The notes under the pieces: generated by a model
Told to the model about the DNA's origin: nothing
What the model saw: only the letters and a program-made list of their open reading frames with translations
Databases searched by the model: none
Shown here: piece after piece, positions 7,817 through 60,560 of the stretch
How the letters are laid out: each line of letters begins with the position of its first letter
Numbering within the stretch: the stretch's first letter is position 1
Origin: Podarcis melisellensis
Taxonomy: Eukaryota
Direction: 5' to 3' (one strand)
Assembly (NCBI GenBank): GCA_964234715.1
Contig: OZ174275.1
Length of the DNA: 64,000 nucleotides
Made by a program: the position numbers and the translations under genes

Positions 7817-7896
7817 ATGCAAAGGAGGACAGAGCTTCTGTATCTTTAACCATTCTGAGCATATGATACAGATTTTAGATGTAGATGTTCTTCAGT

Positions 7897-8092
7897 TCCA
7901 GTTACAGATAGGTAGCCGTGTTGGTCTACCATAGTCAAAACAAAAAAATTCCTTCCAGTAGCACGTTAAAGACCAACTAAGTTAGTTCTTGGTATGATAT
8001 CTGAAGATATCTGAAGAAGTGTGCATGCACACGAAAGCTCATACCAAGAACTAACTTAGTTGGTCTTTAAGGTGCTACTGGAAGGAATTTTT
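7897..8092. mobile_element. Penelope-like element, inverted-arm insertion
   Basis: Antisense arm then sense arm containing hammerhead; 12-bp TSD atgttcttcagt (7885-7896, 8093-8104). Confidence 0.8.
8008..8043 (+). ncRNA. Minimal type I hammerhead ribozyme motif (Penelope-associated)
   Basis: TAT-CTGAAGA-A-GTGTGC-AT-GCACAC-GAAA-GC-TC^ATA: conserved core, stem II hairpin, palindromic AGCT in place of stem III, TAT/ATA stem I. Confidence 0.72.
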
Positions 8093-8189
8093 ATGTTCTT
8101 CAGTGTAAGTCACTTGGAGACCTACTTGTGACAAAGACAAGAGACTGTTTGTTGTCAACTGTTAATGACTGCACTTGGTCTTATAGGAA

Positions 8190-12423: not shown

Positions 12424-12469
<46 letters not shown>

Positions 12470-22950: not shown

Positions 22951-23192
22951 CAGTGCTGCTTTGGGTTACATATGCTTCAGGTTACATACGCTTCAGGTTA
23001 CAGACTCTGCTAACCCAGAAGTAGTACCTCGGGTTAAGAACTTTGCTTCAGGATGAGAACAGAAATCGTGCTCCAGCGGCATGGCAGCAGCGGGAGGCCC
23101 CATTAGCTAAAGTGGTGCTTCAGGTTAAGAACAGTTTCAGGTTAAGAATGGACCTCTGGAACGAATTAAGTACTTAACCCGAGGTACCACTG
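22951..23192. mobile_element. Tc1/mariner MITE copy 2, nested in hAT MITE
   Basis: Same family as 2438-2658; TA TSD splits gggattTA|tagtcc of host element. Confidence 0.85.
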
Positions 23193-24549: not shown

Positions 24550-24681
24550 ATGTGCTGTATACAGCACAATAAAATACAAGTTACACATTTAGAGATCAGG
24601 TAGGGCAGAACTTTCCAGACTTCTTGTTGGTGGGACACTTTTTAGACATGCATCATTTTGTGACACCGTAATTCAGTTTTA

Positions 24682-24888
24682 CAGTGGTACCTCGGGTTAC
24701 ATACGCTTCAGGTTACAGACTCTGCTAACCCAGAAATAGTGCTTCAGGATAAGAACAGAAATCGTGCAGCAGTGGCGCAGCGGCAGCAGGAGGCCCCATT
24801 AGCTAAAGTGGCGCTTCAGGTTAAGAACAGTTTCAGGTTAAGTACGGACCTCCGGAACGAATTAAGTACTTAACCCGAGGTACCACTG
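24682..24888. mobile_element. Tc1/mariner MITE copy 3, nested in hAT-like element 24606-25019
   Basis: TIR cagtggtacctcgggtta, TA TSD; host termini cagaactttcca / tggaaagctctg. Confidence 0.88.
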
Positions 24889-27383: not shown

Positions 27384-27701
27384 TACCTTGCTTACATTCA
27401 CATGACGTGAATCTGGTCATGACAACAAACGAAATTTCTGCATCTGTTTCCATTTCTTATTGGGACTTTCTGTCCGATTTTCCTACTTACAGTACATTCA
27501 AAAACATAAACCTCACATTATACCATGAATAGAATTCCTACAGACACCTTCCATTCATGCATACAAAACAAACCCTCTGTTACAACTATGGAAAACTTTG
27601 GCAGCACCCTAATAACAGAACCCAACATCATCTCAGTCCATCAAAAGCCTGTGGGGAAAGTTAAGTCCTTACCTGGTACTGAAAAGATTACTGCAAATAT
27701 T

Positions 27702-27798
27702 GGTGTATCTGAAGAAGTGTGCATGCACACGAAAGCTCATACCAAGAACTATCTTAGTTGGTCTTTAAGGTGCTACTGAAAGGAATTTTTTTTTGTTT
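27702..27798 (+). mobile_element. Penelope-like element, single sense arm
   Basis: Same sequence as 8008-8092; 10-bp TSD tgcaaatatt (27692-27701, 27799-27808). Confidence 0.8.
27706..27741 (+). ncRNA. Minimal type I hammerhead ribozyme motif
   Basis: Identical 36-mer to 8008-8043. Confidence 0.72.
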
Positions 27799-28869
27799 TG
27801 CAAATATTATGTGGCCCTTGATGACAAGAAGGGCCTCACACCTGTATTATGCTTTTTATGGTATCAGTCAGATATGTTCTATGAACCCTCCTTTTACTCA
27901 TTGACAATCAGTATTAACTTCCCAAGACGTCGTAAGTCATAGCATAGGAAGGAAGTTTAGTTTAAAACTGAAAAGTCGTATAGCATTATACAGAGATCAT
28001 CTTAACAAACATGTAAGGAAATAGTGCCTTGTGTTCTTTGACATAGTTGGCAGCCTGGGTATATAAATTAAATATGCAAATGGAAGCAGCGTCACTTTGT
28101 CGTGGCTTTTTCTCAAAGCTCTTCAAATAGCCCCCTGGAGAGCATCACATTACCTGTTTTGTAATGCGCTATGGGTACATTATAAATCACAAATTGTTCT
28201 TTGCATTTTTATATAACATTCCCCCAAGTAAAGCCTTATGAATTTGCTTGGGCTTGCTAGGAAACTCTGAAGCATCCATCAGATGCTTGTAATTGCCCAT
28301 GGGAAGACTAGATTTACCAGTTTCTTGACTAGATTGATCTGTACCCAGAATGACAAATCCCGTCTTCCTTCAGAGGTGTCAACTTCACAGCCGTTGGCTA
28401 TAGTCTGGTAGCTGAGAACAAATCCCCATTTTAAAATAATATAAAGAGGGTTGGTGTGAAAATTACAAAATGTGAGCTACACAGCTATTGGTATGCAAAT
28501 CATGAGGATACCACAAGCTATAGTTCAGAAGGCCCAGAGTGACGCCATGTTGGTTGTTGTTTTGCTCTGTCTCCTGAGAAATGCTCAACCGAGGATCTGC
28601 CTAGGAATACAATATTTTCATTACTGAGATAGGTTCTCACTGGTTAAAACCAATGTTGCGAAACAAATTTCATGAAATAAATTTGAAAAATACCTCATTG
28701 AAAAGGATTCATTCTTTATCCTGTACATTTTGTTTGATAATATCTGGTACAAGTTTGCCAGCAATGGGGATTTTGTTTCCAGTGTGAAAAATTCACTAGT
28801 GTCACCATCACCATTTAAAATATAGTAGAAAGGGCTTTCCTGCCATCTGTCCATTTGAATCCTGGCCAA

Positions 28870-35492: not shown

Positions 35493-35729
35493 GTAAGAAC
35501 CATCTTATCTAAAACATGCTCACTGTAGTCCTTCAATTTCTTACAGTGGACTATTGTATTGATATAGCAACACCTTTCCCTGAGGATTATCATTTCACTC
35601 ATTAAATCATGGGCTCTTCATTGCTTGGACTAATCTACACTGGTGAGTTATAACATTAAAAATACGTTATAAAATGTGACACCAGAGCAGCAATCCGTTG
35701 TCAATGGGATATATAGATATACATATATA

Positions 35730-35971
35730 CAGTGGTACCTCAGGTTACATACGCTTCAGGTTACATACGCTTCAGGTTACAGACTCCGCTAACCCAGAAA
35801 TAGTGCTTCAGGTTAAGAACTTTGCTTCAGGATGAGAACGGAAATCGCACTCCGGTGGCGCGGCAGCAGCAGGAGGCCCCATTAGCTAAAGTGGTGCTTC
35901 AGCTTAAGAACAGTTTCAGGTTACGTATGGACCTCCGGAACGAATCAAGTACTTAACCTGAGGTACCACTG
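35730..35971. mobile_element. Tc1/mariner MITE copy 5, inserted in a (TA)-rich tract
   Basis: TIRs and TA TSD. Confidence 0.88.
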
Positions 35972-38747: not shown

Positions 38748-38988
38748 CAGTGGTACCTCGGGTTACGTACTTAATTCGTTCCGGAGGTCCGTTCTTAACC
38801 TGAAACTGGTCTTAACCTGAAGCACCACTTTAACTAATGGGGTCTTCTGCTGCCGCCGTGCCGCCGGAGCACGATTTTTGCTCTCATCCTGAAGCAAAGT
38901 TCTAACCCGAGGTACTATTTCTGGGTTAGCGGAGTCTGTAACCTGAAGCGTATGTAACCTGAAGCGTATGTAACCCGAGGAACCACTG
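38748..38988. mobile_element. Tc1/mariner MITE copy 6
   Basis: TIRs and TA TSD. Confidence 0.88.
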
Positions 38989-40310
38989 TACTATGAACAT
39001 GGTAGTTGCTGACCCTTATTCAGTAGGATGGGAGTATTTTGCAGCTCAGCAGGATAGGTAATTGAACAAAAGGCTTGTAGTTCTTTGCTGCTGTTTCCAA
39101 TTCATCCCGGGGGAATGGTTTTCCTATTTATTAGCCATATAATAACCTATGCATGGGAAGCAGTTGCTGTAACTCTTTACACTATCTCTACACTGTAAGC
39201 CAGTGCTGCCTTGGTATACGGCTTTGTTTGTTTATTTGTGGTATTTGTATTCCATCCTGTTACATAAACCTCTGTAGATGGTTTACAATAAATCCGGGGG
39301 GAAAGAGAGTTGAAATACAAAGTAAAATATAAAACCATTTAAAAGGGTGGAGGAAACTCTTCTTAAATACAACAACAAAACTAGTTGCATTGAAGGAATT
39401 GTGAGGTGTCCAGGCACGGGGAAATTAGACTACCTGCTGCCATGTAGGCCTAATTATCCACAGGAAAAGAAATAGAAGTATACTAGTTTATTAGGTATTT
39501 TTGTGCTTTCATTTTTGGGTTTTTATCTTGTGGACCTGCCCTGTGATCTTTGGATGAAGGGTGGTATACAAATTTAATGACTAGTAATAATAATCTCAAA
39601 TACGTTTGTGTGAATCAAATGTCCTTGCTGGACTTTTGGGTATGACAACTGGAACCATCTGCACAACGGGCGAGTTTAACTGCCTACCTACCCATTGATG
39701 CTCCCTCTCACTGCCATGTTCTTTCCCCCCTCCTATCTGGGGTTCCTTAGCAAATGCTGGGGTCTTGAGGTTGCCCATCACCCGGACAGCACACTGAGCA
39801 GGCACACAGGTCACCTGATCACAATCTTCTTCACCATGATGAGATGTAATTTAAAAAGAAAGCAATTTTCTGAATTTGCATCTCCTTCCTTCCAAGACTT
39901 TGAAGCTAGAATCTTGGATGGCATGTTCCTGATTTGTTTTGTTTTATCACAAGAGAATGGGAGCCATTTGGGTTGCTGTAATCTCATGCAATTTTGCACC
40001 GCAGTTTCCTGTCCCCCCCCCCAAAAAAACACACACATTTTGGGCAGGCATGGCAGCCAAAAACAGGGTCCTGAAAAAAAGCGCTTTTTGGAGGGAAATT
40101 GCATTGCAAAATCGAGCGAGAGCATGGCCACTGTTCTCCAGCAATAAAAAACAATGTCCTATTTTTTCCAGGACACTTGTAGGGTATGGAATCTATGTAT
40201 GTAAATTAGCATGTGCAAGTTTTATTTAAATCTGTGACATCGTCTGTCTTTTTCGTTGGGTGGCTATCCTGCAGGCAGATAGCTAACTGAGGCGGACCTT
40301 CTCTTTCTAG

Positions 40311-40505
40311 GTATGGAGCTCCAGGGTGGAAGATTTGAAATCAGAGGCTCTCAAGATTCTGTTTTCAGAAGAGTATGCTGAAAAAGAGCACCTGAAGCTT
40401 TCAAATCAGAAAATGAACCTATTGCAACAGGAAGTGAACCGTTGTATGGAGGAGCGGAAAACCTTGTTGCAAGAAGCCAATGAATTCTTCATTGCAGCAG
40501 CGAAG
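40311..40505 (+). CDS. CCDC141: CCDC141 coding exon (approx. exon 7), 195 nt, phase 0-0
   Basis: ctttctag|GTA TGG...AAG|gttagt; VWSSRVEDLKSEALKILFSEEYAEKEHLKLSNQK...LQEANEFFIAAAK. Confidence 0.92.
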
Positions 40506-43850: not shown

Positions 43851-44386
43851 GTGGGACACTAAACAACCTGCTGTGTCACTTCTCACCCATTAAAAGGAGA
43901 GCGCTATGACATTATTACGTTGAAGAGCAGTACAGGCGTTTCCCCGCCTATGTGAGGTTTACGTTCCTGGTTACCACGTGTATATGTGAAATCACCTATA
44001 GTAGGCAACACCATCTAAAAAGCCTGTAAACAACATCTAAACCTCTGGGAACCCTTAAAAAACCAGCAGCACTTGCCAGAAGCCCCCCCCTTTTGAAGCA
44101 AGCTTCCTAGTGCGTGGCCACATTAATCAACTGCAGCAGGCTGAAAAGGCCATGTTACCGAGTATCGTATTATGCTGAGTTGGCACCATCTATGAACTGT
44201 AGCAATATAGGAAGGGGCAATCCTGACAGCCAGAGTGGTTATCACAGCTGTCATGGAAAAACTCAACTTCAGAAGGCTACAGTCTTCAAACTTCCTACTA
44301 TATACAATGTTAAGAGTAGTGGCTTTAGAGCAGGTCATCTGTGACCAGTCTTACAACCCGACCCTATCCGTCTTTGCAAGGAAGTA

Positions 44387-44612
44387 CAGTGGTACCCCAG
44401 GTTACATACGCTTCAGGTTACAGACTCTGCTAACCCAGGAATAATACCTTGGGTTAAGAACTTTGCTTCAGGATGAGAACAGAAATCATGCAGCAGTGGC
44501 GCGGCAGCAGCAGGAGGCCCCATTAGCGAAAGTGGTGCTTCAGGTTAAGATCAGTTTCAGGTTAAGAACGGACCTCCGGAAGGAATTAAGTACTTAACTT
44601 GAGGTACCACTG
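44387..44612. mobile_element. Tc1/mariner MITE copy 7
   Basis: TIRs and TA TSD. Confidence 0.88.
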
Positions 44613-45235
44613 TAATTTCTACTGAGTTCAATGTTGTCTTTTCTGCTGAAGACCTTCCTCTTCCAGCAAGCCATTTCAGGTAGAGATCTTTCCCTGTCTG
44701 CATCCAGTACCTTTCGAAGAACAAACTTCATTACTAGTATGGTTTATGTCATGAAGTCCAGAGAATGGTATCCAAGTAAACAGCTCTACTAGCCCAACAT
44801 AAGCATTTTTGGCTCTGCCAATGGGATTTCCACTCCCTCTCCTCTTGTCATGTGCTGCCTAAATCTGCTCTGGAAGGTTGAGGAGAAACTCACAACAGAT
44901 TTTTTTTTGGGGGGAGTGCAGAGGGGGAGGGGAAGTTTCATTGTCCAGCCTGCACTATGGGACCTATATAGTTGTATACCGCCTAGAGTTCTTACCCAAA
45001 GGTTCCTGAGTTTTTCAAAACTGACTGGTAATTTTATTGTTGTGAGTGGCTTGAAGTCACTTTTGTTTAAAAAAGGCTAATATAATACTCACCATCACCT
45101 ACAATTCTAGGGTTTGAGAAGGGAAATTACATAAACTGGCTCACCCTCCACTGCTGCTGTCTTCTCTCGAAGTGATAATCCTGTCATTATATCCCCCACC
45201 CCATCCATTTTTCTTCTTCAGACATCATTCTCTTG

Positions 45236-45516
45236 TTACAGATAGGTAGCCGTGTTGGTCTGCCATAGTCAAAACAAAAAAAATTCCTTCCAGTAGCACC
45301 TTAAAGACCAACTAAGTCAGTTCTTGGTATGAGCTTTCGTGTGCATGCACACTTCTTGCACATGCTAATTTACATACATAGATTCCATACCCTACAAGTG
45401 TCCTGGAAAAAATAGGACATTGTATCTGAAGAAGTGTGCATGCACACGAAAGCTCATACCAAGAACTGACTTAGTTGGTCTTTAAGGTGCTACTGGAAGG
45501 AATTTTTTTTGTTTTG
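45236..45516. mobile_element. Penelope-like inverted-arm insertion with captured 69-bp local sequence
   Basis: Antisense arm 45236-45357, filler 45355-45423, sense arm to 45516; 12-bp TSD atcattctcttg (45224-45235, 45517-45528). Confidence 0.85.
45423..45458 (+). ncRNA. Minimal type I hammerhead ribozyme motif
   Basis: Identical 36-mer to 8008-8043. Confidence 0.72.
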
Positions 45517-46688
45517 ATCATTCTCTTGGTCATTTTTGAAAGTCAAACAAGCATCCATTTTTATTTTATTTTTTTGCTGTAAAAAGGACTGAAGATACTT
45601 TCCCCCACATTCTCACTTCATCATCTTTTTGGTAATACAGCAATTCAGACATTTCCCTCATAACTGAAGGCAGAGATACTCAGAAAAAGAAAAATGTGCA
45701 CCGGGAAGCCGAGAAGCCGATAATTTGGTTTCTGACATTTAACTAAAGAGCATTTTTAAACTGAAGGCCCCAGTCCAGTTGCCATTACTCTCAGCAGCAA
45801 GTTGCTTTACAGGTTTCTGCTGTACATGAGACTCTTGCCATGTAACAAGATATCTGTGCTCTCAGCTTTAGCAGCACTAGTTCACCAGGGAGGAGAGAAT
45901 CTGGATTCAATGTTCCCTTTCATAAATAAATGGTTGGCGTTGTAAGAACTGACAGTGCTGTCTATCTTGTCTGGTGCTGCCCCTGTAGCCTCATGGACAT
46001 ATGGATGTGCTCAATACTGACTGTGCATTGGCCCATCAGGCTCAGTATATTCGGACTGCCAATGGTCTCCACCACATTTGAGAGACCTTCCCTGCCCTCT
46101 ACCTGAGGTTCTTTTATGGAAAACACCAGAAATTGAGCCTAGAACTTTATGAACGTAAAGCAAGTGCCCAGCCACTGACCTATGACTCCTTCAGTTCCCT
46201 GTCTGCTAAGGAGAGCAGTGTGCACAGCTGAAGGTGCTTCATATAAGGACTTGATCAGGAGCAGAGCCTCCTTTGTGCATGCAGATTTGGTAGGAGCCAG
46301 CATATGGGAACTTGTTCCAAAACTATGGAACAACATGGTGTCATGCCTTCAGGGTAGTGGGCCCAACTCTATGGAACTCAATCACAGTAGAAATCAAGCA
46401 AGCCTCAATCATCCCTGCTGAATTTCAGAAGCCTGGTTAAAACTATTTTATTCCAGAAGGACTTTGCACCATGAATCTGCTCTGACATTTCAATCTCTGG
46501 TGCTTAATTTGTGTTTTAAATTTTGGATGTGTTTTGTAAGCCACCTTGGGATTCAGATGGTAAAAAGCGGGGTATAAATTCTTAAAACAAAATGGTTTCT
46601 ATGCTGAGTTGAAGAAAAACTGTTTTGTAATATGTTTTATTTAAAAGGCCCGTCTTTTACTTTTCAAAAACTGTATTTGTTTTGATAG

Positions 46689-46861
46689 GCGTGTGACGTA
46701 CTTAGAAATGTAGAGGCCTCCCTTAAGCTTCTTAACTCTGAAGGAATAAGCTTGCCTCTCTTGGCAATAAAACATGAGGAACTGAAGAAAGAGATTACAG
46801 AAGGATCAGCTGATGCCTTGAAGAAGGGACAAACCTTGCTTAGCAAAGGAGATGCCCACAG
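46689..46861 (+). CDS. CCDC141: CCDC141 coding exon (approx. exon 8), 173 nt, phase 0-2
   Basis: ttgatag|GCG...CAC AG|gtaagt; [57 protein letters not shown]. Confidence 0.92.

Positions 46862-60506: not shown

Positions 60507-60560
<54 letters not shown>
60385..60560 (+). mobile_element. L2-clade LINE 3' end with (TTA)n tail, close to exon 17 acceptor
   Basis: ggaagccgcccagagtggct...cagatggg...gggtataaataataa. Confidence 0.8.

Follow-up and report, generated by a model that had tools for sequence, protein, structure and literature searches.

The locus and its host gene

The DNA analysed here is a stretch of 64,000 nucleotides from Podarcis melisellensis (contig OZ174275.1), referred to below as the window. 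It holds a 281-bp insertion in one intron of CCDC141, and the insertion contains a 69-bp filler that matches a donor sequence in the preceding intron of the same gene. That the host gene is CCDC141 had been proposed in an earlier note on this DNA, and two results bear the proposal out and place the gene on the + strand. An open frame at 40311-40502, which bears an AG acceptor and a GT splice donor, matches residues 302-363 of Alligator sinensis CCDC141 at 73% identity, with mouse CCDC141 also matched; the best match of this exon, which was searched singly against 1.8 billion proteins, is a partial protein of Varanus komodoensis (79%). When the alligator CCDC141 was mapped on the window, 13 colinear exons were placed on the + strand. 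By this mapping the exon between the donor and the insertion runs from 40314 to 40505 (alligator residues 302-365), and the next exon, also on the + strand, runs from 46689 to 46859 (residues 366-422), with the insertion in the intron before it. Given these flanking exons, the donor and the insertion lie in adjacent introns. A Pfam search with the CCDC141 exon gave no match.

Anatomy of the insertion

The insertion spans 45236-45516 and is flanked by the TSDs atcattctcttg at 45224-45235 and 45517-45528, which are identical at 12 of 12 positions. It begins with a PLE tail of 34 bp (45236-45269, - strand) that is A+C-rich (21/34) and is found on the left arm only. The left arm itself (45270-45357, or 45236-45357 with the tail) is antisense, lies on the - strand, and is 5'-truncated, ending inside the CUGANGA box of the hammerhead motif described below. 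It is followed by the 69-bp filler (45355-45423, - strand), which is the exact reverse complement of 40151-40219, and by the sense right arm (45421-45516, + strand), which reaches the 5' end common to the family. The description of the locus as a TSD-flanked Penelope-like insertion with inverted arms, in which an antisense arm, a filler and a sense arm lie between perfect 12-bp TSDs, is therefore upheld. The insertion is a short non-coding PLE unit of about 96-99 nt with an optional tail of 34 nt.

The two arms are alike in sequence and unlike in their ends. Their identity is 100% over 88 bp, and the arms, filler and TSDs together show 0 differences at 169 positions compared; the insertion is young. 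The outer end of the right arm is the tail-less RT start site in a T-run, which is the same as in the solo copy A of the family (27800), and the 34-bp tail is missing from both. The innermost bases of the right arm read atctg (up to tgtatctg), a stretch of 5-8 bases that the left arm is without.

The arms pair as a perfect stem of 88 bp, and the single-strand fold has an energy of -118.6 kcal/mol (z = -26). In CCDC141 pre-mRNA the hairpin would give a long double-stranded stem. Over the hairpin (45287-45497) Rfam reported sub-threshold matches to several microRNA precursor families, both plant and animal, the highest score being 73.7 bits where the gathering score is 119; we take these as the effect of any long perfect stem and not as microRNA genes.

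The element family in the window

A profile search of the window with the arms recovered three insertions (five arms) and nothing else. Copy A (27692-27809, + strand) consists of a solo, tail-less sense arm at 27702-27800 with a TSD of 9-10 bp, (t)gcaaatatt. Copy B (7885-8104) is arranged head-to-head within the 12-bp TSD atgttcttcagt and has a tailed, truncated antisense arm, whose tail is 39 bp long, together with a complete sense arm. At the centre of copy B lies a 10-bp tandem duplication, tatctgaaga, both units of which end at the 5' end of the element. The tail-less arm has the same start (tatctgaag) and the same T-run end in all three insertions, and in both inverted copies it is the tailed arm that is truncated. 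Each insertion has its own variant. In the insertion studied here both arms read actgactt; in copy B both read actaactt, and the solo arm of copy A reads actatctt. The sharing of the private variant actgactt by the two arms, already pointed out in the earlier note, implies that both were made on one RNA source.

Some further features of these copies were observed. In copy B, five extra bases (tccag) separate the TSD from the tail, and the truncated arm stops at most 2 nt from the predicted hammerhead cleavage site. Among the six nick sites inferred for the three insertions, the base pair after the nick is GT at four (gtc, gtc, gta and gta, at 45235/45529, 45223/45224, 7896/8105 and 27691/27692), a sample too small to speak of target preference.

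Head-to-tail tandem copies were sought in the window and none was found, the three dispersed insertions being the only copies, so that the family does not qualify there as a non-LTR retrozyme. Eight of the long ORFs of the window, three of them beside the donor, gave no match to Pfam, and no RT or endonuclease domain was found in them. The unit is only 96-130 nt long, and the ATG in its helix II meets a stop after 9 codons. Judged from their sequence, the copies are non-autonomous or extremely truncated, an autonomous PLE being recognised by an ORF with a telomerase-like RT and GIY-YIG, which they are without.

Two other kinds of repeated sequence were seen in the window. Short segments of 38-46 bp, about 97% identical and present in both orientations, recur at 24680-24740, 38914-38990, 35728-35765, 44385-44422 and 22977-23020 and presumably represent another interspersed repeat family. 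Identical repeat tracts at 12425-12469 and 60507-60559 match one another at 6-bp offsets.

The hammerhead motif

The minimal hammerhead ribozyme (min-HHR) was described by Cervera and de la Pena (2014, PMC4209133). It has the boxes CUGANGA and GAAA, one additional nucleotide in front of helix II, G10.1 paired with C11.1, a palindrome at 15.2-16.2 and 4-5 bp in helix I. By inspection against this description, a complete type-I motif was recognised at 45421-45460 (+ strand), in the right arm, where every one of the listed features is present. The order of the core is the 5' strand of helix I, CUGAAGA, an unpaired A, helix II, GAAA, the palindromic GC, U, C17 and AUACC, and helix I is formed by AUACC pairing with GGUGUAU upstream of the core. 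Helix II, gtgtgcatgcacac, is a perfect palindrome of 14 nt closed by G-C and occurs at 45434-45447, 27718-27731 and 8019-8032. From the hammerhead cut site to the first RT end there are 61 nt, followed by the A+C-rich tail of 34 nt.

The earlier note had called the insertion hammerhead-bearing. This applies to the right arm, with its complete putative core, and does not extend to the left arm, whose core is incomplete and stops inside the CUGANGA box. Rfam reported no hammerhead in the whole window at gathering thresholds and none at the locus at E values of up to 10, and copy A folded as RNA was unremarkable (z = 0.22). The motif is a putative ribozyme, and any self-cleavage would be expected to take place as a dimer.

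Origin of the two arms

The left arm had been regarded as the one that holds the 3' end of the element, and the whole as a hairpin copy. Work on the Poseidon element of Anolis suggests another view of both points. The purified Poseidon protein cleaves and extends both DNA strands in vitro, RT starts at two internal sites on the RNA, which are the same for both strands and the interval between which is a tail of about 34 nt, and the protein is predicted to act as a dimer on a multi-copy RNA (Frangieh et al. 2024, PMC11167929). The spacing in the present insertion, 61 nt from the cut site to the first RT end and 34 nt of tail, is similar. The extra 34 bp of the left arm are the tail that PLEs may or may not carry, delimited by the two places where RT starts (PMC11167929, PMC8557442), and both arms end at genuine RT start sites; the left arm then has no special claim to the 3' end. 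As for the hairpin copy, the right arm keeps inner bases that are absent from the left arm and ends at the tail-less start site. A right arm made by fold-back, that is, as a self-primed copy of the left arm, is ruled out by these inner bases and by the tail-less end, and the same two features require two independently primed cDNAs.

Two cDNAs, one for each 3' end of a cut with a 12-bp stagger, give the simplest account and fit best. Two such antisense cDNAs are complementary to one another only at the palindromic helix II, and they could pair there. Both cDNAs here ran past helix II, so that another route was needed to join them.

The filler and its donor

The filler agrees with the reverse complement of the donor (40151-40219, + strand) at 69 of 69 positions, and the match extends by 0 bases to either side. 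The donor lies to the left of the insertion at a distance of 5.1 kb, and it ends 91 nt upstream of the acceptor of the exon at 40311-40502. Both the perfect match and this distance to the exon had been given in the earlier note and were reproduced. A ctaac motif at 40283-40287 is the likely branch point, and the 3' end of the donor (40219) lies 67 nt upstream of it. The 5' end of the donor stands at the foot of a small 10-bp hairpin at 40151-40180 (acaatgtcc ... ggacacttgt), which is not significant against shuffled sequences, and the donor folded as single-strand DNA is likewise unremarkable (z = 0.60). The DNA-transposon relic whose end the donor spans according to the earlier note is a candidate only, the three long ORFs beside the donor having given no Pfam match.

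Overlaps of 3 nt, which had also been claimed, are present at both joins. The left one is ctt (45355-45357), common to the left arm and the filler. The right one is tgt (45421-45423), common to the filler and the right arm on the condition that ggtgtatctg of copy A (27702) is element sequence, and this condition is supported by the helix I pairing of the hammerhead. The chance of an overlap of at least 3 nt at both junctions is about 0.003. The 69-mer and all of its 16-40-mers are found at two places only within the 64-kb window, and in a self-BLAST of the window the 69-mer was the sole exact non-repeat duplicate of that length; the donor with 300 bp on either side gave no further match within the window. 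With two occurrences in the window and microhomology at the joins, the filler is well described as a templated copy of a local and apparently unique sequence.

It could be argued that nothing was captured at all, and that the 69-mer is a part of the element or a high-copy repeat, or that the join is a chimera of the assembly or the library. Palindromic PLE insertions do trouble assemblies (PMC8557442), and the copy number of the 69-mer comes from the 64-kb window alone. Such an explanation is nevertheless very improbable. The 69-mer, with its two copies only in 64 kb, is missing from the other four arms of the family and the flanks of the donor have no similarity to the element, so that the 69-mer as an element part was rejected within the window. 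The identity begins and ends precisely at the junctions with the arms, which would be unexpected for independent copies of a repeat. Intact TSDs and clean overlaps point to a biological join, and the window contains no Ns.

How the filler may have been acquired

Taking the anatomy, the exact donor, the overlaps and the independence of the arms as given, one may reconstruct conditionally the order of events, the end that was extended, the polymerase that acted and the use of DNA or RNA as the template. The endonuclease of the element would cut both strands 12 bp apart, and each 3' end would prime its own cDNA on RNA of the same source, the + strand end starting at the distal RT start site to give the tailed arm and the - strand end at the proximal RT site to give the tail-less arm. 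The result would be two antisense cDNAs facing each other, which, both having passed the palindromic helix II, would skip pairing there. One 3' end, most simply that of the left cDNA (...ctt), would anneal by 3 nt to a local single-stranded template, 69 nt would be copied in a single run, and the new end (...tgt) would pair by 3 nt with the other cDNA, after which the gap would be filled in. The filler needs no more than a single template switch and a single 3-nt annealing. The more likely template for this step would be DNA, namely the + strand at the donor 5.1 kb to the left, which 5' resection of the same end would have exposed; this amounts to a snap-back in cis.

This bridging at integration on a DNA template in cis is the explanation that we favour over the use of CCDC141 intron RNA, tentatively and with a little less than an even chance of being right. 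That the filler is a templated bridge is indicated by the identity at 69 of 69 positions and by the 3-nt overlaps at both ends. The donor is on the side and the strand of the left 3' end, and the filler is inverted relative to the donor, as a snap-back predicts. The donor's 3' end coincides with no recognisable RNA end. Resection over such a distance (5 kb) has a precedent, as 6.3 kb was inferred for a LINE-1 cDNA end annealed back to its own DNA end (PMC11702581). The junction also seems to be prone to switching, as the centre of copy B likewise has a templated repeat of 10 bp, both copies of which end at the same position of the element.

Several points weigh against the DNA template, the first being that there is a single event to go by. 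RTs jump between templates readily, and one was present on the site. If the left cDNA was extended, the template had to be of + strand sequence, either sense RNA or + strand DNA bared by resection; for the right cDNA it had to be of - strand sequence. If it was the right cDNA that jumped, and this cDNA stands at the 5' end of the element, the classical jump point, the template was the - strand, which resection from this break would not bare on the left side. A clean tract of 69 nt without untemplated bases is, furthermore, long for polymerase theta; a more processive enzyme, possibly the RT of the element working on DNA, is more likely.

The second possibility is that the RT, after leaving the element RNA, used CCDC141 RNA (sense pre-mRNA or the excised intron) as the template for 69 nt before the join to the other arm was made. 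The filler is antisense to CCDC141 on the strand that continues the left cDNA, and nascent intron RNA of CCDC141 would have been nearby the break at which the RT was present. A single clean tract of 69 nt suits a processive RT. The LINE-1 RT is documented to switch templates at the primary end, and chimeric RT products in inverted arrangement have likewise been recorded (PMC11702581); for PLEs, template jumps have been proposed as part of replication in Adineta vaga (PMC3846280). The earlier note had read the polarity of the filler as the one expected for sense pre-mRNA or intron RNA, with templated DNA repair as an alternative, but the polarity does not single out RNA: + strand DNA fits the polarity equally well, and two cDNA ends together with sense RNA permit either orientation, so that the match has little weight. 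The entry point at 40219 is internal to the intron and is not the free RNA 3' end that end-to-end jumps prefer, and the left cDNA ended 10 nt before the 5' end of the unit, with no run-off. Marks that only RNA could leave were sought in the filler and the donor, and no splice junction, poly(A) or RNA end at the boundary was found, a result with which RNA is still compatible; as the donor is a continuous piece of intron, the sequence reads the same for a DNA and an RNA template. On balance a jump to RNA is rather unlikely.

The data are compatible with a filler that was gained at integration or one that may have been gained later. In the latter case a plain head-to-head palindrome would have been formed first, and a later break or stalled fork at its centre would have been mended, by MMBIR/FoSTeS or by end joining with synthesis, through a microhomology template switch in which the donor 5 kb away was copied. 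Long palindromes are fragile and a central asymmetry stabilises them, and the filler does sit exactly at the centre of symmetry, between arms that form a perfect stem of 88 bp. Replication template switches typically show overlaps of 3 nt and copy, in inversion, sequence a few kb distant; related models have been put forward for inverted repeats. Set against this, the 0 differences over 169 positions leave little time between the two events, and the central repeat of copy B ends twice at the 5' end of the element, which resembles run-off copying and not random breakage. Later repair is judged unlikely, and gain at integration on a DNA template in cis is kept as the preferred reading.

Meaning for PLE integration

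The fold-back architecture is textbook for PLEs, and in this respect the insertion adds a clean case to a kind already known. It contributes a donor that is known exactly and lies in cis, with an overlap at each end of the filler, and it does so in a vertebrate; no PLE report of such a donor with overlaps at both ends was found in the open-access literature. The last steps of PLE integration are what is at stake, namely second-strand synthesis, the origin of the inverted repeats and the joining of the ends, and the sole in vitro study of a PLE stops at first-strand synthesis on both strands (PMC11167929). With its donor 5 kb away identified to the base, the filler is a rare snapshot of PLE end joining.

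A broader proposal would be that head-to-head PLE cDNA ends in the squamate genome are regularly joined by the copying of about 70 nt on the nearest single-stranded template, be it resected flank DNA or nascent RNA. We regard this as quite unlikely. Were it true, one could read from the fillers, in hundreds of young fold-back copies, how PLE integration is completed, by which polymerase and on which template. If more cases are present in the genome, statistics of orientation, distance and strand could separate an RT jump onto RNA from repair on resected DNA. The single case is a well-documented curiosity and is not evidence that such insertions record nearby transcripts, as the earlier note had suggested they might.

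Comparison with known systems

LINE-1 twin priming is a natural comparison. Its segments are adjacent, non-overlapping parts of one RNA, whereas the arms here overlap by 88 bp, and both copy the same region from defined start sites, so the insertion falls outside twin priming in this sense. The process was reportedly described by Ostertag and Kazazian in 2001. The likeness is that a staggered break offers two 3' ends, each of which primes cDNA, and that microhomology joins the products (Kojima 2010, PMC2912911; PMC11702581). Templated insertions and template switching by the RT are also known from LINE-1 sites (Mendez-Dorantes et al. 2024, PMC11702581).

Compared with the products of polymerase theta, the single clean tract of 69 nt copied from 5.1 kb away is atypical in both length and distance. 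Tracts made by this polymerase are templated close to the break. Polymerase theta insertions have a median of 7 bp and are mosaic (Kent et al. 2016, PMC4912351). The snap-back activity of the enzyme is similar in that the tract is complementary to a sequence of the same strand and that microhomology is found at the joins (PMC4912351).

Closer parallels are found among the PLEs of Adineta vaga, where unrelated non-coding host sequence has been seen between PLE pseudo-LTRs in one TSD-flanked insertion (Arkhipova et al. 2013, PMC3846280). Shared with the insertion described here are captured host sequence, palindromes at inverted junctions and the invoking of template jumps (PMC3846280). The spacers of Adineta vaga reach 0.9-1.5 kb, and nearby donors and junction overlaps do not appear to be given for them (PMC3846280), while here the donor is 5.1 kb away in cis and the overlaps are 3 nt.

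Among PLE insertions of the canonical kind, the Poseidon_Ac element of Anolis carolinensis has the same layout and a different sequence around the hammerhead and the tail, as judged by eye against its consensus. The canonical PLE insertion architecture is said to go back to Evgen'ev and Arkhipova in 2005. An inverted, 5'-truncated copy beside the main copy, with a tail of 30-40 bp at one end, is typical of these elements (Craig et al. 2021, PMC8557442). The insertion in CCDC141 agrees with the canonical PLE insertion in its TSDs, its head-to-head arms with one of them 5'-truncated, its one-sided tail of 34 bp, the minimal hammerhead in the repeat and the two alternative 3' ends 34 nt apart. 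It differs in being very short and non-coding, with no RT or endonuclease ORF nearby, and in carrying a foreign piece of 69 bp at its inversion junction.
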